A DNA stretch of 61,473 nucleotides, counting the filler, from Basidiobolus meristosporus CBS 931.73 (taxonomy: Eukaryota; Fungi; Basidiobolomycota): NCBI GenBank assembly GCA_002104905.1. It is 4 parts of 4 records of this genome, joined end to end, with 100 filler letters (N's around TTAATTAATTAA, not from the genome) between each part and the next. Parts side by side here need not be neighbours in the genome. Positions count along the whole stretch, not along the records: positions 28,733 to 40,344 come from MCFE01001271.1; 3 more parts are not named here. One strand, given 5' to 3'. The number at the start of each line of letters is the position of its first letter. Positions within the stretch are counted from its first letter, which is position 1. This document shows positions 28,733-40,344 of this stretch, piece after piece. The notes under the pieces are model-generated. The model was not told the origin of the DNA. It ran no database searches and saw only the letters and a program-made list of their open reading frames with translations. Made by a program: the position numbers and the translations under genes.

Positions 28733-30105
28733 GCTGACCCGCCGCCATTGCCACCATATTCGCCGCCTTCTCCACCTCCGTTACCACCGTACTCCCCTCC
28801 ACCCCCTCCGCCACCACCGTATCCACCGCCAGAGCCTCCGCCATGACCGCCGTATTCACCACCACCACCGCTACCACCATATCCACCAGAACCACCGCCG
28901 TTTCCACCATATTCGCCACCGCTACCACCGCCGTTTTCCACCATATCCTCCACCGCTGCCACCACCGTTGCCGCCATATTCCCCGCCACCGCCATTTCCA
29001 CCGTATCCTCCCCCGGAGCCGCCTCCATTACCGCCATATCCTCCTCCTCCTCCGCTGCCACCGTATCCACCGCCAGAGCCTCCGCCATTGCCACTGTATC
29101 CACCACCTCCTCCACCGTTGCCTCCATATTCGCCGCCACCGCCACCACCATTACCACCATATCCTCCTCCTCCGCTGCCACCTCCGTTGCCACCGTATCC
29201 ACCGCCGGAACCTCCGCCGTTGCCTCCATATTCGCCGCTGCCGCCGCCACCATGACCACCGTATTCACCACCACTACCTCCTCCGTTGCCTCCATATTCA
29301 CCGCTGCCGCCGCCACCATTACCGCCGTATCCTCCTCCTCCTCCGTTACCACCGTATCCACCGCCGGAACCTCCACCGTTGCCTCCATATTCGCCGCCAC
29401 CGCCACCGCCACCACCATTACCACCATATCCTCCTCCTCCGCTGCCACCGTATCCACCGCCGGAACCTCCACCGTTGCCTCCATATTCACCGCTGCCGCC
29501 GCCACCATTACCGCCGTATCCTCCTCCTCCTCCGTTACCACCGTATCCACCGCCGGAACCTCCGCCGTTGCCTCCATATTCGCCGCCACCGCCACCGCCA
29601 CCACCATTACCACCATATCCTCCTCCTCCGCTGCCACCTCCGTTGCCTCCGTATCCACCGCCGGAACCTCCACCGTTGCCTCCATATTCACCGCTGCCGC
29701 CGCCACCATTACCGCCGTATCCTCCTCCTCCTCCTCCATTACCACCGTATCCACCGCCGGAACCTCCGCCGTTGCCTCCATATTCACCGCCACCGCCACC
29801 ACCATTACCACCATATCCTCCTCCTCCGCTGCCACCTCCGTTGCCTCCGTATTCGCCGCTACCACCGCCACCATTACCGCCGTATCCTCCTCCTCCTCCG
29901 CTACCACCATATCCACTGCCAGAACCTCCGCCGTTGCCTCCATATTCGCCGTCACCACCACCATTACCGCCGTATCCTCCACCGCCGCCTCCGCCGTTAC
30001 CTCCATATTCACCACCACCGCTACCACCGCCATTACCGCCGTATTCTCCTCCTCCTCCGCTACCACCATATCCGCCGCGGGAACCTCCGCCGTTGCCTCC
30101 GTATT

Positions 30106-30136
<31 letters not shown>

Positions 30137-30415
30137 ATTACCGCCATATCCTCCACCTCCGCCTCCACCGTTACCTCCATATTCACCGCCACCACCACCA
30201 CCAGAACCTCCGCCATGACCGCCATATTCACCGCCGCCGCCGCCACCACTGCCGCCATATTTTCCACCAGAACCACCTCCATGACCTCCATACGACACAC
30301 CGCCACCACCATTACCGGCGTAATCTTTTGTGTCATATCCACGCTCCAAGACTGCGGCATTAACCAGCGCCACGGCAGAGGCAACAAACAGGATTTTAGC
30401 CGACGAGAACTTCAT
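28733..30415 (-). CDS. Secreted glycine-rich repeat protein (GGYGGNGGG / GGEYGGNGGG repeats), 3' end lost in the gap
   Basis: Signal peptide MKFSSAKILFVASAVALVNA, and a TATA (GTATAAATA) at 30469-30477. The repeats continue in another frame after one extra T in the run at 28934-28937 and run into the gap. Confidence 0.85.
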
Positions 30416-30800
30416 TCTTGTAGTACGAACTGAGAAACTTTAATAAGCAACACAAATTCTTGAGCGGGTATTTATACACAGGAGACATCTAATGAGGCAG
30501 GTTTGATGTTGATCTTGGGAGATAATCCAGGGGAGTAACGATTGTTCTGAGCCGGAAACAAAACTGACATGGTTGGTCACCGATCGTGCATGACCAATCT
30601 AATCCTGAGACTTGCATGGTTTATTGAGTGTTGATTGAGGTCTTATGTGCTTACTACACATTCAAGTGCAAAGGACAGATCGACACTCCTGGACAATGAA
30701 CATCCGCATGACATGCATGCGAATAAGGAACGAATCAAGCGAATGGGATTCAGCGATGATTGATGACCAACATCACCCCTTACTCAACAAACAATCAACA

Positions 30801-32976
30801 CTACAGCAACGAAGTGTCGAATACTCGATACCTCTTTACCAAACTACCATCCTCGGCGGTGACCGTGTACGACTTGATGCAGCAATCAAACCAAAGTCCG
30901 TTGTAGGGCGTCAAGCGAGGGCCATCCCATAATTTACGAAACCTCTGGTGAAGGGCGTTAAGGGTTTCCTGATCTGCATGCAAACTGGATTTGATCAGCA
31001 GAGAATCGATTGTTGTGACTGCAGGAGCTTACTTGGTGGGGGGCAGGCCGTCGAAGAAATTCCTCTTAATGAGTTCAGGGTTGAGTTCGAAAAGGACTGG
31101 TGATGGAGATAGGATAGCAATCACATACCGCATCTTTTCCGTACAGATACACCGGCAAAGTGGATCGAGCGCGATCCTCCACTAGTAGGGCAAACATGTA
31201 GATGAACGAATATTTGCTCATTGTAAACGAGCACTCGGGGCATTGTGTGAGCTGGATGCGCGTAGGGGCGAGGCTGGTGAACATGTTAGATGCAGTGGTA
31301 AGCAAGGGAATCGCCAAAGCAAAACCTTTTGTTGCAATTGGTGCAATACGGTCTTGCGAAGTCCTCCATCTTTTCTGGCATGTAGTCCGTGAGACGTACT
31401 CGGATCCGGAACTTCGCATTAGCCTAGCAAACATCAGACAGATGAGATAAGCCGCACCCGACGCGCTGGTATAGATGGCGAACATGCCTGAGGGTGATTG
31501 AGCACATCGTCTATCGAGACTGGGATCTGCGTTATGTGCTTGATGGCTGAGGGTAGTGCGGTGAGCAGCTGCACACTGGGGATGCTAAATACCAGACGTA
31601 CCGGTGATCTGTGGGTTGTCGTGGCTCATCCCTTCGGCAAGATTTCGAGAAAATTCAGCATTGGCGTCTTCCAGAAACTCCTTCTTCTGTCTTGAGGCAG
31701 TTAAGTAACGACGCGGTGAGTCAAAAGAGACGCTCGATAACAATACCGGTTTAGGTCTGCGACCTGGGGATGCGACTTGTCCAGGATGACGACGTTCGGC
31801 TCGCTGTTCAGATACCCACGTTTGTCTCCGTGCAGCTTGAATTCCATATAGCCCATTGGGGATATCTTGGCATTGAGGTTTCGCATGAAGACATAGCTTC
31901 CAATTGGCAGCTGTTCTCCCACCTCCGCGTGCTCGTCCCAGAGTAGGCATTGCACCACTCGAGGGCCATAGACCGCGTACGGATCCTGGGGGTTTCTTGG
32001 GGTTACGCTAACGTTTGTGGGTGAGCGAATACGTTCCGGGATTAGAGGATTCAATGATTCTTACGGTAAACTGTGGTTAGTGGTGTAGTCAGTCAACTGG
32101 AGCTCAACGCACGACGGAAGATTCCCCGAAGTCACTTTCACAACCTTTGAAGTGGGAAATGGGCGTGAGCGTTCGCGTCTAGACCAGTTTTCGAGAAAGG
32201 CATCCTACCTCACCCACAAAATCAAAGAAGGTGTAAGCTTTGACTTGGGAAAGTTTCAATGTCGACCGCTGAGATTTTGGCGGTACATATTCCTTCAAAA
32301 CTGGCACAGAGATGGGTGCGTCTTTCGCCAGCCACCACTCCTTCATCCATTTGGCGATGCGAAAGTCACACTCGTGTGAAACAAAGTTACTCGATTTCGT
32401 ACACGCGTCGGAGTCGCGACTTCCGTCAATCACCATCCAACTGGAGGATTTGGTGGAAATTGCTTGGGTTTTGTTGCCGAAGGGCTGAATCTACTAGGTC
32501 GTTAGGGAATGCGGTCTACTCTATGGAATGCTTTCGCGTAGAGTAGCATGAGGAGGTCGCATACCTTGACTTCTTTGCAGAACAATATATCCCCAGTCTT
32601 GGCCACTTTCGGGAGAAGCCCCACAGAGGATTTGAAGTAATTGATGACAACGGCCGACCCACCAGCGGCATCGGACTTTGGGTCGGTGATCACAGTGGAG
32701 CCTACATAGTCTACAGAAATTTTCAGCTTGGGACTGACACCAGCATGAGGTAGGTGGTTCAAGGCTAACCGGTTCCTCGGCTCTTCTTGGGCGCTTTGAA
32801 GCTAGTAACCACCCCCACCACATTCGCATAGTTCGACCGGGGCCGCAGGTCCAATATTGATACATAGCCTAATTCCCCTCTCTACAAACGATTCTTTATT
32901 AATTCCCAACTCGAGCTCTCTCGAAAGCAAAAAACCTAACCTCATACTCCTGTTGAGTCTCTGAGCAACTCATCAT
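30801..32976 (-). CDS. POT1: Protection of telomeres 1 (OB-fold telomere ssDNA-binding protein), 12 exons, 507 aa
   Basis: Exons: 32976-32941, 32881-32770, 32710-32565, 32490-32209, 32144-32065, 32007-31747, 31690-31602, 31546-31488, 31423-31326, 31273-31129, 31064-31033, 30984-30801. They sum to 1524 nt and every phase is consistent. Motifs are NVVGVVTSFKAPKKSRGTDY (OB1), LTDYTTN and LWDEHA (OB2), and KFRIRVRLTDY, CTNC..CPEC, FDCCIKSY...YRVFDT (C-terminal OB3). Introns are 48-74 bp. Confidence 0.88.
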
Positions 32977-33194
32977 AGGGCGTGTGACCACCGGACTGAT
33001 CAAGACGATTTATAAGCAGATGTTTTGGTGAGGAAAACGGGCAGATCATTGGACGATGCTTGAGGGATAAATATTTATTATTGGGAAAGCAGCACAAAAA
33101 GTACGGGCTATTTTATGATTACATTGGATGCTGACTGGGGGGATTTTTCTTGTTTACAATTCATTCAGTTGGAGGCCGCGTTCTGGACAGTAAC

Positions 33195-35417
33195 TTAATC
33201 CGATGTTCTGGACGCAACGCTTGGGCGAAACTCGACCGCACACGAAGCCCCGTCGCAGAATCTTTCCATCTCCGGGTCCTCGTTGTCCCCCTTGTGGAAG
33301 TCCACCTTCGAGATCCCGCTAGCCATCTCGAAGTACTCATCCTCAGTGATGGCCTCGTAGGGCATCTGGGGATAGACGCCAGCTGGGATGCGTGGAAGGA
33401 AAGAAATCCCCTTGAGTTGGTATTGGAAGTAATCCAGGGCGTGCTTCATCTGGTCCCCTTCGGTTTCCGGATCAAATGTCACCGTGCAACTGACCTGATT
33501 GTCCGACCAATAGCGTTGAAGGAATGAGGTGAGGCTGAGCTGCTCCCACATCGACACCTCTTTCAACCCACGCAAGCCCTCGCCATGATCAATGGGGATC
33601 TCTACCACGTAAGTGCTGCTCTCCCACACGTCGTCTTCTATCTTGTAGCCGGCCTTGCGCAGAGGCTCGATCAGCTCCGAGCTTTTCGCGATACGTACTC
33701 GTCTGATGCAGTACCGGGACTCGGGGAAATGAAGCCCGGGGGTAGCGCCGGCGAGCAGTGAGACCGTTCCGGATGGCTTGACAGTGGTGGTTTTGATGGA
33801 GTGGGGGATGCAGAACAGTCTCGATAGCTTATCGTCCACCGCCTGGACCTGAGCATATCCCTCTTCGCACCACTTCTTGAACTCATGGATGCCATGCTTG
33901 CTGATGAACTGTGCAATGCCACTCAAGCCGGTTCCGATGCGTCTGTTGCGTAGCATCACGCGGTTGGTCTCTGCCCAGTGGGTTTTGCCGAGGGTGACGG
34001 TCTTGGCGTACATGAAGGCCAGCTCGATGGTTTCAAGAAACTCCTCCATGGTCTCGTGGTTGTTGGGGAAGATCTCGACCAAGCAACAAAGCTCGAACGA
34101 TTCCAAGGTCTGTTCCAGGCATGGGTTTCCTCCCAGCGCCAGACGGTCCTTCATGTTCTTGGGATCCTCCATGCGTCCGTAGTTCTGGGCATTTTCGAGC
34201 CAGGCAAACCCAGGCTCCCCGTTCTTGGCCGCGCGGGCGCAAACGCCGGAGTAGTCCATGCCCAACTCCGCAAACACCGAGTTATTACTGGTCCAGCCGT
34301 ACTCGATCCGATGCGGGTTGACCTCGTAGTTCTTGAGGTCGATGTACTCCTCGTCGTTGGGATCCCCAAATGCGATTTCTGCTGTTCTACGGATCTGGAC
34401 AAAAGGGGTTAGTTGACACTACCAACACATGGTTGCACAAAGGTGTTCTATTCTTACGTTGCCAGCGACCACGCACTTGCCAATCAGATTCATGATGTCG
34501 ACGATGCTGGTGACGGAGATGGGCGCCCCCACATTCTTCTCCAGGATGTTGCGCACTTGAAGATGGAGGTCCTTGAGTGCGGCCGAGCCTGAGGAGACCC
34601 CGCCAAATCCCTTGATAGGGAGGCCAGCCGGCCGGATCTTCTCGTAGTCGAATTCCTGGACTGGCATGCTTGGATCGAAGTACGACTCGATCAAGAGCTC
34701 CAAGGATTTGACCCAGCCCTCACGAGAATCTTCGATGACATAGGTCTCGGTGCGGCTCTTGTCTGGTCCCGTTATATTGATATGTTTCTCCTTTGCAGTG
34801 GCTGCCCCTCTGGTGTCAAAGCCGACGCCCACTCCAAGCATGGAGGCGTCCATCAGGAAGGTGAAGGGGCGACTGCGTTGATGCCCCTCTTCAAACATGC
34901 ATGTGGTGCTAACGAACGCGCAGTTGTTCAGGGCGGTGTAAATCCCGCGCTCCTCTGTCAATGGGGATCCCATCGCCCAGAGGCCTCTGCCGGGTGGAAG
35001 GAACTTCATGTGGAAGATACGGTCAAACATTTTCTGTGCGGTGACCTGAGCTGACTGAGGATTCCAGCCTAATTCGTTCAGCTCCATGTGGCGCTTTTGC
35101 ATGTTAAATGTGCCATTCACCACTCGCTCCACGGTCTCAAACCTAAATTCAGTGGTGTTAGAGGATTCCAGTGGCTTACAACACTCCCTATCCGAGGCCT
35201 ACCATTGCTCACGTTCGCCGTTCTCCTTTAGCCGAGAGTAAGTTCTCTGGTACACGATGTTGCCCAAGCCGTTGAACCCAAACGGCGCTCTTTGGTGTCT
35301 ATATTTTTCAACAAACTCGGAGTCCAGCTGGAATTGGTTGCTGCCCTTTTTGCTGCTGCTGCTGCTGCTGGCAGTGGCTGGTGAGCTGGTAGACTGAGCA
35401 TTCTTTACGGCACCCAT
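33195..35417 (-). CDS. nrdJ: Class II adenosylcobalamin-dependent ribonucleotide reductase, monomeric RTPR type, 3 exons, 699 aa
   Basis: Exons 35417-35203, 35142-34458 and 34394-33195 total 2100 nt, with GT-AG introns of 60 and 63 bp. Motifs are EQWFETVERVVNG, LNNCAF, VVAGNIRRTAEI, GGNPCLEQ...LCCLVE, TTVKPSGTVSLLAG and a C-terminal CDGASC, matching the catalytic Cys set of Lactobacillus RTPR (C119/C408/C419/C731/C736). Confidence 0.95.
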
Positions 35418-35494
35418 ATTTTCAAATTCTTTACAAATGGAGATGGCTTTTTGTTACAGCAAACGAATATTGGTGGTCCACTCGTCCACACCAA

Positions 35495-35503
35495 TATTTA
35501 TAC
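35495..35503 (-). promoter_or_regulatory. TATA box of the class II RNR gene
   Basis: GTATAAATA about 80 bp upstream of the ATG. The same 9-mer precedes the three Gly-rich genes. Confidence 0.6.
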
Positions 35504-37077
35504 CAGTTGTCTGTGGGCTGGACCCTGCCATTCCACCCTCATCACCAGGATGAACCCAGGGTGATCGCCAGCTGGATCCCCGGATCCGTTGCCGCAGCCG
35601 AGCCCAGTTTCATTTATTCAGCCGCCATTTTTGGGAACCAGCTAGGATCTGATCCGGCGCGTTGACCTTCGTGTGATGGACGTGTTTTTACTCGATTTGG
35701 CTCCGACGGATAGACTTCACCAACCGCAGCCCGTGGATTCACCAACCTTCCTAGATCTCCTCCACCGCACCAAAGTGAGCATGGTCGAGCTGGTGGTGGT
35801 GTGATGCTGGGTTGGGTTAGGTATCAACGGTTCCCATAGTTGGGGAGATGGATCGATCACAATTCGCCCGGGAAACCAAAACAATGCGGGTTCTAGCTCG
35901 GATTCCTCGGACTAGAGCCTGTTCCGACCGCTGTCAGATATCCTAGCGAACTGGACCGTCACGCCTTCATCTAGAGCCCCTCTGTTGACCGGGTGGTCTT
36001 TGTTTTGATGTGGATGCCATGCCAAGTACCTTCCCATTCTCTCGTTCGAGGTGACTTGGATTTCCTCCAGGTCACGTGATATACATTGGCGGTCCCATTC
36101 ATTGGCCGAGAGGAAGGTTTTACATAAACAAAGCAATCTTCACGAATCCACCAGCGAGATTACTTGGCTTCGCTGCCACCCTCGCCTTCTGTCTAGGCCG
36201 AAAAAAAAATATCCTTCCAACTGGAACCTGGGGCTCAGTCCACTGTAAACAAGGTGGATTCCCTGGGTGGCAAGGTTCGCATTCATTGGGTCGAGCCGTG
36301 AATTATGCCATCCGCTTCAAGAGGTTCAGACACCTTGGAGTGGATACCTTAGCAATCCCATTTTGAGGCCATGTCCTGTATCACCCTCATGCGGGGAGTT
36401 GTGGCTCGGTGCCTACTTGAGAAATTTTAGCTTCAAGCTTAATCCAGCCAGTTACGAGTTCTACGGTGGGGTGTAGGGCCATGCAAGTGCACTGTATATC
36501 AAGTACTGTTGGCGGTGTGCAATTGTGTGATAGGGATGGTTGAGGTTAGGATACACAGGTTACTGTGATACTGTTGGGGATGATCCTGTCCGATGTTCTA
36601 AAGTGTACTCACAACTACCGGCTCACTGGGTTGAGCTTTTGGCTAATGAGTATTTGGCACGGGCTTTAACACACTGTTGCATATTTGGTTGGTTTGTAGG
36701 CTGCCGTATCTCAGGCAGCATCCAATCTTATAACCCTGCGAGTTCAGATTTGGCGGCATTTGCTTATTTTATTGAGATAGCCCAAATATCCTGCGGGATC
36801 GCAAGCAAAAGGGCGTAGACAGTCATTTTGGTGACTGCTATGTGGTCAAAGAGGTGACGAGTACATGGTGCAACATCATCAGGTAGCCACCAAAGAAAAG
36901 GAAAAAGGTTGTTGTGTAGTGAGCTACAACAGAAATGCCAACATTCACATCAGTTTGGTATACCAAGGTATGTGCAGCTCTGTACAAGTAAGCAAGAAGC
37001 CATGACTGATTCATCCAAGAAAATACTGCTGGAAAGGGCAATGCAGCCCATCCAGAGTATAAAAAAAATGTTAGAGG

Positions 37078-37690
37078 TGTTATAAAAGTTTGTAATTCCA
37101 CCTAAATATTCACCTAACTTAGTCACTTGGATCATTGCCTACAAATCTTAGAGAATTCTGACCAGATTCCTTGTTGCAATTTACTTGGAATATTCCCACT
37201 AAAATATCAGGTACTCAGACCATGACATCATTGTTAGGAGGGCATTCTTCTCCCATGACAATATCCCAAAGGCCTCTTTCTTGTAGCAGCATCTTCATCT
37301 TCACCTTCCACACTTGGTAGTTAGATCCATCCAACTTTTTAGCAGAGGGAGAAATTCTAGTAATAGCAGTAGTAGACATTGCAGAGAGTGACAGCTTGGG
37401 GCTCATAACCTGTTGTAAGAGTCTTGGAGATATTGGAAGTGACTAGGAGTACAAGTAGATTATGTGGCTTTCCCTTGATGATTTATTGAATGTAATAGTA
37501 ATATTTATACTATTACCACATAATCTATTTGTCCTCCCAATCACTTCCAATATCTCCAAGACTCTTACAACACTGGGTACTTGGTATTTTCACCTACACA
37601 TCAGGTACTCAGAACATGAAAATCAGTTGTGTTCCCCAAACAGACCCAAACTTTGCACCCATGTCCTCAGGACCTTTGTAATATATTCAA
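37078..37690. mobile_element. Scrambled copia LTR / PBS / gag-start fragments
   Basis: Plus LTR part at 37078-37220, minus gag start (MSPKLSLSAM...KKLDGSNYQVWKVKMKMLL), PBS at 37399-37410, LTR start at 37411, then further plus LTR pieces. Confidence 0.8.
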
Positions 37691-37699
37691 CATGTTTGT

Positions 37700-39002
37700 T
37701 TTGCCAAGACCATGCCATATGAAAAGTAATTGTGATGATGCTGTCCAAAGGCTACCAATTAAAATCCTGTGACTGAGAGGTATTGATTCTATCTGCACAC
37801 TGTGCAGAGACCACTAAGAAAAATTGCTCCCCAGATTTCACAAAAAACTTGGACAAAATTTTTCATCATAGCAATACATAAGTGGCTTTTGATTGGTTCT
37901 CTGCCAATTCTCTCACTTTCTGATCCCAGACACTCAATCACCTCCTACATTTGTGTACACCAATTGGTTATTGCATCTCTTTCACACATCTGACTTCCAA
38001 ATTCAACCAATGCTCTTACTTTTTGTGCATTCATATTAGTTTATTTCTGCTGAAACTTCAGTTGCAACCCAATTGCCAATTGTATTGATCTATACAAGTC
38101 CCTATACTCTATACTAACATTAAGCCCAACCCCATACTCTGCAAGTAGCTCCATTAAAATTCACCATTTAATAAGTATTACTGCTGCAACACCCTTTTCC
38201 ATGACTTGGCAGGAACCCTGCTGTATTGGCAATTATGCATTCACTGGTTCCCATACATCCTGGTCTTGAGCAGGCATTTCAAGGTCTAGCACTTTATCTG
38301 CCAGACTTTGCAATAAATCCTTGAAATATTCAAGTGCATTTTCTTGAGCACTGCTATTGAAGAAGTGCTGCAGCCTCATGGTGTGCCTATTTATGTTTCA
38401 AATTCCACTGTAGGAAACATGATAGTCTTTTAAGTTCTGGACATTGTTGCTTTGTCTGTTAGTGAGATCTACACTCTGTCTACAATGGAGGATGTGCAGG
38501 GAGTGGTGGATGAATTGCCTTTCTCTGCAAGCTCCTACACCTCACTGGAGTGAAGTTGAACTGGCTGCACTTCCAACTCTGGTGAAAACAGCTGTTGTTT
38601 TGTTGGTAATTCTTGGCTAATATGGGATTCAGCTTGTTCTGGGCTGAGGGCATTGATTACTGAGAACTGCAGCTTTTTTTGTATGCTTCCCTGTCCCTGA
38701 CTTCAGTAGATTTTTTCTCTTTACCATTACCTTTCTCACTGCCAAGTCATTCACTGCAACTTTGACTGAGTACTTCATATACTGTACTCTGCTTTCTCTT
38801 GGCTAAATGCTGCACTGGTGCATTCTTTTCTGCCTGCTTGTCCCTTAACAGCACTCTGCTGGCAGCCTGGTGTTTCATTGCTGCTTGTTTCAAGCTTTTG
38901 GCTCAGCTTGTGACAGGATCCTGAGAAAGCCATGTGTTATTATCACTGTCATGTCCTCTACTGCCACTTTGACTGAGTGCTTCTTGTAATGAGCTATACA
39001 TC
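37700..39002 (-). mobile_element. CACTA second-ORF / subterminal fragment in inverted orientation
   Basis: Reverse-complement homologue of 10000-11350 and 47600-49050. It is cut by the copia LTR at 39003. Confidence 0.75.
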
Positions 39003-40344
39003 TGTTGTAAGAGTCTTTGTGATATTAGAAGTGATTGGGAAAACAAGTAGATTATGTATGCTTAGGAAGGTCCCAAGAACATATGTGCAAAGTGTGGGGC
39101 TTTTTTGACAACTTTGAGAATCTTTATGTTCTAGGTATCTGATACTTTGTTGAAAATAATCTGAGCAATTCCCAACAAGGAACTTGGTCTTTATTCTCTA
39201 TGATTTGCAGGTAATGGTCTGGGCAACTATGCTAGGTGAATATTCAGGTGGAGCTGCAAATGCTTACAACACCCCCACTCAGCTATATGTTCATTTGTAC
39301 TAGTCCTAATCTTGACCTAAGATAATCACATTTTCTCTAGCTAATGGCTTGGTGAGTATGTCTGCAATCATTTTATCTGTGGAGCAGTAAACTAAGTTAA
39401 CCATGTGATTTCCTATAGTTTGGCATATGAAATGATGTCTAATATATATGTGCTTGGCTCAGGCATGAATAGGTTGATTTCTACATGATTGTATATATCA
39501 TTGATTATTTTGAAATAAAGTATTAAGTGGTTTTTGACATAAGCCTAAATCTTTAAAAGGGTTTCTTAGCCACATTGCTTCTTTTGTTGCTTCACAGGCT
39601 GCCATATACTCTGTCTCTGTGGTAGAAAGTGCCACAGTTGGTTGCTTTCTTGAATTCTGTGAAATTGCTCCTTCAGAGCAAAGAAAGGTGTATCCTGCAG
39701 TGGATCTTTTGTCTTCTAAGTCTGTCCCCAATCAGCATCAGAGTATCCCACAAGATCCTGTTCTGAATCCTTAATGGAGCACCTTAAGCAGGTATCAGCT
39801 GTTTCTCTTAGGTATCCAAAGTCTGCTCAACTACTGCAATATGTTTAGATCCACAGTTTTGATTATGCTGGCAGATGGCTCCCACTGGATATGAGATATC
39901 AGGAGGTGTCCCAAGCATGATTTACATCAGACTGTCAACTGTAGAGCAATATGGGAACTCTGAGCTTTCAGATAGCACCATGCTCTCTTGATTTGGTTGA
40001 GTTTTGACCAAGTAAAGGTTTGTCTGCATTTGGGCACCTACAGGCTTACAGTCTCCCATTTGATGCTTTATTGGGATATCTTGAATATACTTGGACTGGC
40101 TGAGGGTGATAGTGTGTATACTTCTGTCTATGGAGAACTTTGTTCCTAAGCAGTAACTGAGTTCTCCTAGATCAGACATCTTGAACTCCTTAAATATGCT
40201 GGTTATAGTCTGATCCAAGGTTTTTTGGGTATTAGTGGCTATAACAGTATCATCCACATATAGAGCAGATAGAGCTGGATTAGCTATATCTGGCTCATAA
40301 CAGATACTATGGTCAGAAGTGCTCCTTTGGAAATGCAATGATTC
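39003..40344 (-). mobile_element. Copia 3' half (LTR 39003-39271, PPT, RNase H, RT), truncated by the gap
   Basis: TGTTGTAA...TTACAACA LTR with an internal deletion. ORFs include ALYVDDTVI and AISQNSRKQPTVALSTTETEY. Confidence 0.88.

Follow-up and report, generated by a model that had tools for sequence, protein, structure and literature searches.

A spliced nuclear gene of Basidiobolus meristosporus probably encodes a monomeric-type, adenosylcobalamin-dependent class II ribonucleotide reductase

Does an intron-containing gene of the fungus Basidiobolus meristosporus CBS 931.73 encode a vitamin B12-dependent (class II) ribonucleotide reductase (RNR), and if so, is the gene the fungus's own? 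The gene lies on the 11.6-kb scaffold MCFE01001271.1 (11,612 bp) of assembly GCA_002104905.1. This scaffold makes up positions 28,733-40,344 of the window, by which we mean the whole stretch of DNA that was analysed (61,473 nucleotides, filler included, from four records of this genome); all positions below are window positions. We predict, with a probability of roughly 85%, that this nuclear gene of B. meristosporus encodes a monomeric-type RNR that depends on adenosylcobalamin (AdoCbl) and is similar to the RTPR of Lactobacillus leichmannii (the NrdJm type).

The gene runs on the minus strand from an ATG at 35417 to a TAA that ends at 33195, with three exons and two introns. The coding sequence totals 2100 nt (699 codons and a stop) and its frame is uninterrupted. 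The parts of the gene are:

35495-35502, minus strand: candidate TATA box, TATAAATA, 78 nt upstream of the ATG
35203-35417, minus strand: exon 1, with the ATG, residues 1-71, and two of the three bases (TG) for Trp72; matches positions 1-41 of the PF17975 profile (residues 31-71)
35143-35202, minus strand: intron 1, 60 nt, phase 2, GTAGGC...CTCTAAC...TTTAG
34458-35142, minus strand: exon 2, with the last base for Trp72 and residues 73-300; the remainder of RNR_Alpha, the redox cysteine Cys146 (34920-34922), and the insertion domain are here
34395-34457, minus strand: intron 2, 63 nt, phase 0, GTAAGA...AACTAAC...CCAG
33195-34394, minus strand: exon 3, with the catalytic barrel, residues 301-699, and the TAA; searched by itself, this exon matches 1L1L with E = 1.8e-58
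34113-34127, minus strand: finger loop N390-P-C392-L-E394, in exon 3
34086-34088, minus strand: Cys403, in exon 3
33240-33257, minus strand: C-terminal redox pair C680/C685, in exon 3, motif CDGASC

Both introns have canonical splice sites and CTAAC branch points, and intron 1 divides the Trp72 codon after TG. The ATG is the first possible start past an in-frame upstream stop, with A at -3 and G at +4. We searched the exons separately, and each of the three translations is 100% identical to a database protein from this strain (P0001, 699 amino acids), which we used for the full-length analyses. Spliced mapping of P0001 onto MCFE01001271.1 gave the same exon boundaries and the same span (35417 to 33195), so the gene was already annotated with exactly this model. 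P0001 is present in NCBI, UniRef, and EukProt; its name is "PFL-like glycyl radical enzyme" in NCBI and ribonucleoside-triphosphate reductase in UniRef. An alternative donor site (GTGAGC at 35212) was rejected because it would break the frame and remove a conserved E-Q-W motif. Judging from the comparative evidence and the existing annotation, the gene is probably transcribed and spliced; RNA-seq exists for this strain and was used by Mondo et al. (2017) and Tabima et al. (2020; PMC7466969).

Which kind of RNR is it? Pfam places RNR_Alpha (PF17975) at residues 31-131 of P0001, and this match covers profile positions 1-101 and is unbroken across the junction of intron 1. The insertion domain (RNR-II_ins_dom, PF21995; residues 201-272, E = 1.2e-10) and the RNR barrel domain are also present. 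Against TIGR02505, the equivalog model for RTPR (NrdJm), P0001 scores 354.3 bits (E = 1.1e-105), which is above the cut-off of 340.05; exons that were searched singly scored 127.6 and 184.3 bits. Against the model for dimeric NrdJ (TIGR02504), it scores only 56.8 bits, versus a cut-off of 399.95. The L. leichmannii RTPR (1L1L) is the only solved relative by sequence, and it matches P0001 with E = 1.2e-99.

We checked the catalytic residues in an alignment to 1L1L and in an 86-row alignment of homologues. The active-site redox pair, C119 and C419 in L. leichmannii, corresponds to C146 and C403, and both are conserved in 86 of 86 rows. The same holds for N390, C392, and E394 (N406, C408, and E410 in L. 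leichmannii), which are the cysteine of the finger loop that carries the thiyl radical and its flanking residues. The C-terminal shuttle pair, C680 and C685 (C731 and C736), is conserved in 84 and 82 of 86 rows, respectively. Across the 147 alignment columns that are at least 95% conserved, P0001 does not differ at any. The original prediction, made from the DNA sequence alone, was of a complete monomeric NrdJ/RTPR with all of its catalytic cysteines and with two spliceosomal introns, at 33195-35417. Those coordinates are exact, the protein is complete by its TIGR02505 score, its alignment to 1L1L, and the conservation across the 86 rows, and the introns are supported by their splice sites, by the mapping of P0001, and by positions and phases that are shared with other fungi (see below).

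The AlphaFold2 model that we built from a 24-row alignment was poor, with a predicted local distance difference test score (pLDDT) of 60.2 and a predicted template modelling score (pTM) of 0.57. Its best match in the PDB by Foldseek was 1L1L (E = 4e-31, template modelling (TM) score 0.51), which is consistent with the sequence result and is not independent proof.

Residues 1-26 form a Ser-rich, low-complexity extension ahead of the first residue that matches Pfam (residue 31), as the original prediction had it, and the pLDDT is under 50 over residues 1-25. Reading the MGAVKNA start as an N-myristoylation signal was rejected, as the pattern is too loose to carry meaning. The TATA box had been proposed as well. 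The octamer TATAAATA occurs three times in this scaffold piece, versus 0.2 expected, and each of the three is on the minus strand, ahead of an ATG on that strand. The copy at 35495-35502 is thus enriched and well placed, and we infer a promoter role for it.

How would the enzyme work? From the established chemistry of the family and the residues that are conserved here, we would expect AdoCbl to bind to the single polypeptide and its Co-C bond to undergo homolysis. The 5'-deoxyadenosyl radical would then convert Cys392, which is at the finger-loop tip, to a thiyl radical, and this radical would take the 3'-H from a ribonucleotide that is probably a triphosphate. The reducing equivalents would come from Cys146 and Cys403, which would become a disulfide as the 2'-OH departs. 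The flexible C-terminal pair, Cys680 and Cys685, would re-reduce them, with thioredoxin or glutaredoxin as the reductant of the pair itself. Within one polypeptide, the insertion domain (residues 201-272) would provide the allosteric specificity site, where dimeric RNRs build it at the subunit interface. The reaction would be independent of O2 and of a di-iron/tyrosyl R2 subunit, and it would require exogenous B12. By homology, then, the enzyme is predicted to be monomeric, to depend on AdoCbl, and to reduce ribonucleoside triphosphates.

Like the L. leichmannii RTPR (1L1L, TIGR02505), the Basidiobolus protein has RNR_Alpha, the insertion domain, the ten-stranded barrel, and the C-terminal cysteine pair, and the catalytic residues all align. 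Unlike it, the Basidiobolus gene is eukaryotic and spliced and encodes the 26-residue Ser-rich extension, and the two proteins are ~30% identical. The dimeric NrdJ of Thermotoga maritima (TIGR02504; 1XJE and 3O0N) shares the AdoCbl class II chemistry and the barrel, but it gives only weak partial matches (56.8 bits; Foldseek E ~1e-6, TM 0.35) and the insertion domain, which takes the place of the dimer interface, is absent from it. Among eukaryotes, the class II RNR of Euglena gracilis, an excavate, is of the monomeric type and is AdoCbl-dependent. To our knowledge, this is the sole eukaryotic AdoCbl-dependent RNR that has been characterised biochemically. A B12-dependent RNR was reportedly described long ago in an ascomycete, but a search of the available literature for such an enzyme from Pithomyces gave nothing. 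NrdJ from Dictyostelium discoideum, which belongs to a different supergroup than Basidiobolus, is also a eukaryotic class II RNR of the monomeric type; it coexists with a class I RNR and it is expressed (Crona et al. 2013, PMC3605638).

Is the gene the fungus's own? Bacterial contamination, or a recent horizontal gene transfer (HGT) from gut bacteria that is specific to Basidiobolus, would fit with a short scaffold of 11.6 kb, with a copy that has only two introns, and with the 60-64% identity that homologues from prokaryotic metagenome-assembled genomes (MAGs) reach, which is about the same as for other fungi. Also, Basidiobolus is noted for HGT from bacteria, and ~5% of its genes are candidates (PMC7466969). 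To place the gene, we used a tree of 86 rows (24 named eukaryotic sequences and 15 proteins from metagenomes, with 47 prokaryotic loci taken from GTDB genomes) and a tree of 33 rows that was built more carefully. (Sequences from oomycetes, Dictyostelium, and Euglena are not in these trees.) A scan of contigs with an alignment (A1) as the query found 79 prokaryotic loci; a scan of genome contigs with a single protein as the query found no relative. In the 86-row tree, P0001 lies inside a 20-row clade of Zoopagomycota and Mucoromycota (support of 99 in the Shimodaira-Hasegawa-like approximate likelihood ratio test, SH-aLRT), which is nested in a 23-row clade that also holds Gonapodya and Amoeboaphelidium (SH-aLRT 98). 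In the 33-row tree, the support for these clades is 100/99 and 100/98, respectively. Within the fungal clade, Kickxellales and Glomeromycotina are each grouped, and the rows from Mucoromycota form a single group with weak support (80/98). The phylogeny thus gives a well-supported fungal clade that excludes the prokaryotic homologues.

The introns tell the same story. We mapped eight proteins onto their genomic loci: this gene and seven fungal homologues. The phase-2 intron in the Trp72 codon is common to six of the seven homologues (both B. meristosporus paralogues, Calcarisporiella, Rhizophagus, Umbelopsis, and Gonapodya), and the phase-0 intron after residue 300 is common to five of the seven (B. 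meristosporus paralogue 3, Calcarisporiella, Rhizophagus, Umbelopsis, and Gonapodya). Because both introns are at the same aligned residue and in the same phase even in Gonapodya, they must be older than the split between Chytridiomycota and the terrestrial fungi. About a dozen same-phase intron positions are common to the Basidiobolus paralogues and at least one of Rhizophagus, Umbelopsis, Calcarisporiella, and Gonapodya; the homologue from Martensiomyces (Kickxellales) has none of these introns. This pattern implies that the ancestral fungal nrdJ was rich in introns and that introns were lost repeatedly and independently. The conserved intron positions, as evidence from gene structure, independently support the view that this gene was inherited vertically across the phyla of fungi.

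Codon usage and the neighbouring genes agree. The relative synonymous codon usage (RSCU) of the gene correlates with that of the two intron-rich host paralogues (r = 0.76 and 0.73) and anti-correlates with that of the closest prokaryotic homologues (-0.19 to -0.44). The GC content at third codon positions is 0.72 in this gene, versus 0.22-0.35 in the prokaryotic homologues. The same scaffold carries a POT1 gene 221 bp downstream and remnants of copia retrotransposons upstream. These are four independent lines of evidence (phylogeny, intron positions, codon usage, and neighbours), and together they show that the gene is the fungus's own, so we reject contamination and recent HGT, which are extremely improbable and in effect refuted. 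Host-like codon usage, eukaryotic neighbours, and the exclusion of bacterial contamination had all been claimed from the sequence, and all of these claims survive. By the phylogeny and the shared intron positions, the gene descends from one that was already present in the ancestor shared by Chytridiomycota, Zoopagomycota, and Mucoromycota.

Some of the other homologues deserve comment. Proteins from prokaryotic MAGs (L001-L012, L025, and L030) are 57-64% identical to the fungal enzyme, which is about as similar as fungal phyla are to each other. These MAGs are assigned to Flavobacteriales, Rickettsiales, Pelagibacter, marine Methanobacteriota, DPANN/Nanoarchaeota, Anaerolineales, and an unclassified proteobacterial bin. 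The patchy spread over unrelated prokaryotic phyla suggests frequent lateral transfer, possibly via viruses. One of these proteins (L012, from "Proteobacteria bacterium ST_bin11") groups with a eukaryotic transcript from MMETSP, and it may come from a mis-binned eukaryotic contig or from a transfer that is related to eukaryotes. Also, the class II RNR of the aphelid Amoeboaphelidium occidentale (P0174, 1059 amino acids) has an intein-type domain (PF14890) in its precomputed Pfam list, which is unusual for a eukaryotic nuclear gene.

If the gene belongs to the fungus, is this copy still a working class II RNR? It stands out from its paralogues. It has two introns, while P0121 and P0123 (the two B. 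meristosporus paralogues that we mapped) have 14 and 12; the homologues from Rhizophagus and Gonapodya have 13 each, and those from Calcarisporiella and Umbelopsis have 8 each. Six ancestral intron positions are empty within exon 2 and ~7 are empty within exon 3. Its end branch (0.35) is the longest of the Basidiobolus copies in the trees, which hold three of the five from B. meristosporus; the two host paralogues have end branches of 0.22 and 0.06. An approximately unbiased (AU) test did not reject a single Basidiobolus clade (p-AU of 0.548; the constrained tree was better by 1.04 log-likelihood units), so lineage-specific duplication is the simplest reading. The intron depletion and the rate acceleration of this paralogue are a minor new detail.

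These features, along with the degraded retrotransposon sequence next to it, are what we would expect if this copy were a silent or decaying duplicate that arose by duplication or by partial recombination with a cDNA, was dispensable beside four other class II copies and a class I RNR, and was on its way to becoming a pseudogene. However, the frame of 699 codons is intact, and both introns have canonical splice sites and a CTAAC branch point. None of the 147 conserved positions has changed, whereas paralogue 3 has lost one C-terminal cysteine. The TATA-like element and the start context (A at -3, G at +4) also argue for a functional gene, and the fungal genes of this genome have a median of two introns (PMC7466969). 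We consider decay to be unlikely.

Paralogue 3 (P0123, L082:3001-6380) differs at its C terminus. In this protein and in P0002 from B. ranarum, the second shuttle cysteine is replaced by tyrosine (FCDWGPYMF versus FCDxxxC). This lineage has an N-terminal extension of ~170 residues that has no Pfam domain, and paralogue 3 scores 337.2 against TIGR02505, which is just under the cut-off of 340.05. Paralogue 3 may use another reductant or may be impaired.

This copy, around residues 660-679 (33258-33320, minus strand), is without a Pro/Ser-rich insert of 20-60 residues (PTPHSPKPPR...) that lies ahead of the C-terminal tail in the other Zoopagomycota and Mucoromycota homologues that we compared, except in Kickxellales and Endogone. 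In this regard it resembles the sequences from Kickxellales, Endogone, the chytrid, and prokaryotes. The missing insert, the elevated rate, and the expansion to five copies (expansion of a family often precedes divergence) could instead be signs of a neofunctionalised paralogue that kept the fold and lost RNR activity, or that acts on another substrate or with another cofactor. Against this, the residues for the radical, for redox, and for the C-terminal shuttle are all kept, as is every near-invariant column, and the protein scores above the equivalog cut-off of TIGR02505. We therefore view neofunctionalisation as very unlikely. Despite its faster rate, this copy has lost none of the conserved residues. 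A class II RNR remains our preferred reading. The apparent divergence of the copies suggests a division of labour, in which this copy would be streamlined (two introns, no insert, and a short N-terminal extension) and would keep its catalytic residues intact.

Several points weigh against our prediction or against its importance. We know of no assay of any fungal class II RNR. With a pLDDT of 60, the AlphaFold model is too poor for structure to contribute much past sequence homology. The gene is on a small scaffold, beside decayed copia elements. There are five paralogues, so this copy, with the longest branch of the Basidiobolus copies, could be redundant. A published survey of this genome lists no gene for CblC (MMACHC; PMC8085122, Table S1). 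Finally, NrdJ from Dictyostelium is expressed but was not obtained in soluble form, and its role was called enigmatic (PMC3605638), so expression is no guarantee of an understood role.

How much of this was known? Orlowska, Steczkiewicz, and Muszewska (2021) used PF17975 and 1L1L as queries against all non-Dikarya proteomes (PMC8085122). They listed five class II RNRs for B. meristosporus CBS 931.73, which is the highest count in their Table S1 and the largest expansion of the family on record for fungi, and they found a class I RNR in every genome that they analysed. The original prediction stated that class II RNRs had been reported computationally in early-diverging fungi; this was right but understated, as the survey includes this very genome. 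Since the gene is annotated and was counted in that survey, its presence, family, and evolutionary origin were already known. The gene is one of the early-diverging fungal class II RNRs of that survey, which Amses et al. (2022; PMC9457484) used as well, and our trees recover the same fungal clade. The survey did not discuss gene structure, whereas we show that this copy retains only two of the ancestral intron positions and has the longest Basidiobolus branch. A lack of cobalamin-processing genes had been named as a reason to doubt the prediction, and for the same genome the survey gives three cobalamin adenosyltransferases (MMAB), one MeaB, one CblD, two MetH, one methylmalonyl-CoA mutase, and one epimerase (PMC8085122, Table S1). 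The accepted evidence for the use of cobalamin in non-Dikarya fungi consists of class II RNR, MetH, and the methylmalonyl-CoA mutase pathway, and both Amses et al. (2022; PMC9457484) and Merenyi et al. (2023; PMC10406608) took cobalamin use in early-diverging fungi as established.

In B. meristosporus, the class II enzyme would act beside the class I RNR, which all fungi retain, and would allow O2-independent synthesis of deoxyribonucleoside triphosphates (dNTPs) with B12 from bacteria, for instance in the guts of reptiles or amphibians, and the MMAB-type adenosyltransferases in the genome (PMC8085122, Table S1) would make the AdoCbl. Strain CBS 931.73 was isolated from gecko dung (PMC7466969), which is a B12-rich and oxygen-poor source, so this physiological suggestion is reasonable. 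It is plausible that the fungus scavenges B12 and uses it to supply dNTPs in a hypoxic gut. A more specific proposal is that the expansion of the family is an adaptation to the B12-rich, oxygen-poor gut of herptiles and that the intron-poor copy is a dNTP supplier that is highly expressed or is expressed conditionally (under hypoxia or iron limitation). This proposal is tentative, and we think that it is doubtful. Basidiobolus may be a convenient system for testing such ideas, as it is culturable and gut-associated and has five diverged copies.

The other features of the scaffold are:

30801-32974, minus strand: POT1 (protection of telomeres) homologue, multi-exon, 506 amino acids, with Pfam POT1, POT1PC, and OB_POT1A; in the public annotation
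28739-30415, minus strand: Gly-rich repeat gene, secreted-looking, with a signal-peptide-like start (MKFSSAKILFVASAVALVNA) and then ~450 residues of GGYGGNGGG(S/E) repeats
30469-30476, minus strand: TATAAATA, 54 nt upstream of the ATG of the Gly-rich gene
37215-37406, 39498-39731, and 39922-40338, minus strand: decayed pieces of Ty1/copia-type long terminal repeat (LTR) retrotransposons, in the right-hand third of the scaffold, which is richer in AT and carries no annotation

Scanning the scaffold piece for Rfam families and tRNAs gave no matches. The distance of 221 bp given above for POT1 is from the stop codon of the RNR gene. The Gly-rich gene lies past POT1 and reaches the edge of the scaffold, and it explains why the left end of the piece has 64% GC and a GC skew of -0.6; its protein has no Pfam match. 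The copia pieces include a gag N terminus (DUF4219, E = 2.4e-11), with TATAAATA 96 nt upstream of the ATG of the gag open reading frame (ORF), and a reverse-transcriptase fragment (RVT_2, E = 6.7e-12) that is cut by the end of the scaffold. One ORF in this region looks RNase-H-like by eye and has no Pfam match. The copia frames are interrupted by stops, and the order of the pieces suggests that they are the remnants of two elements.

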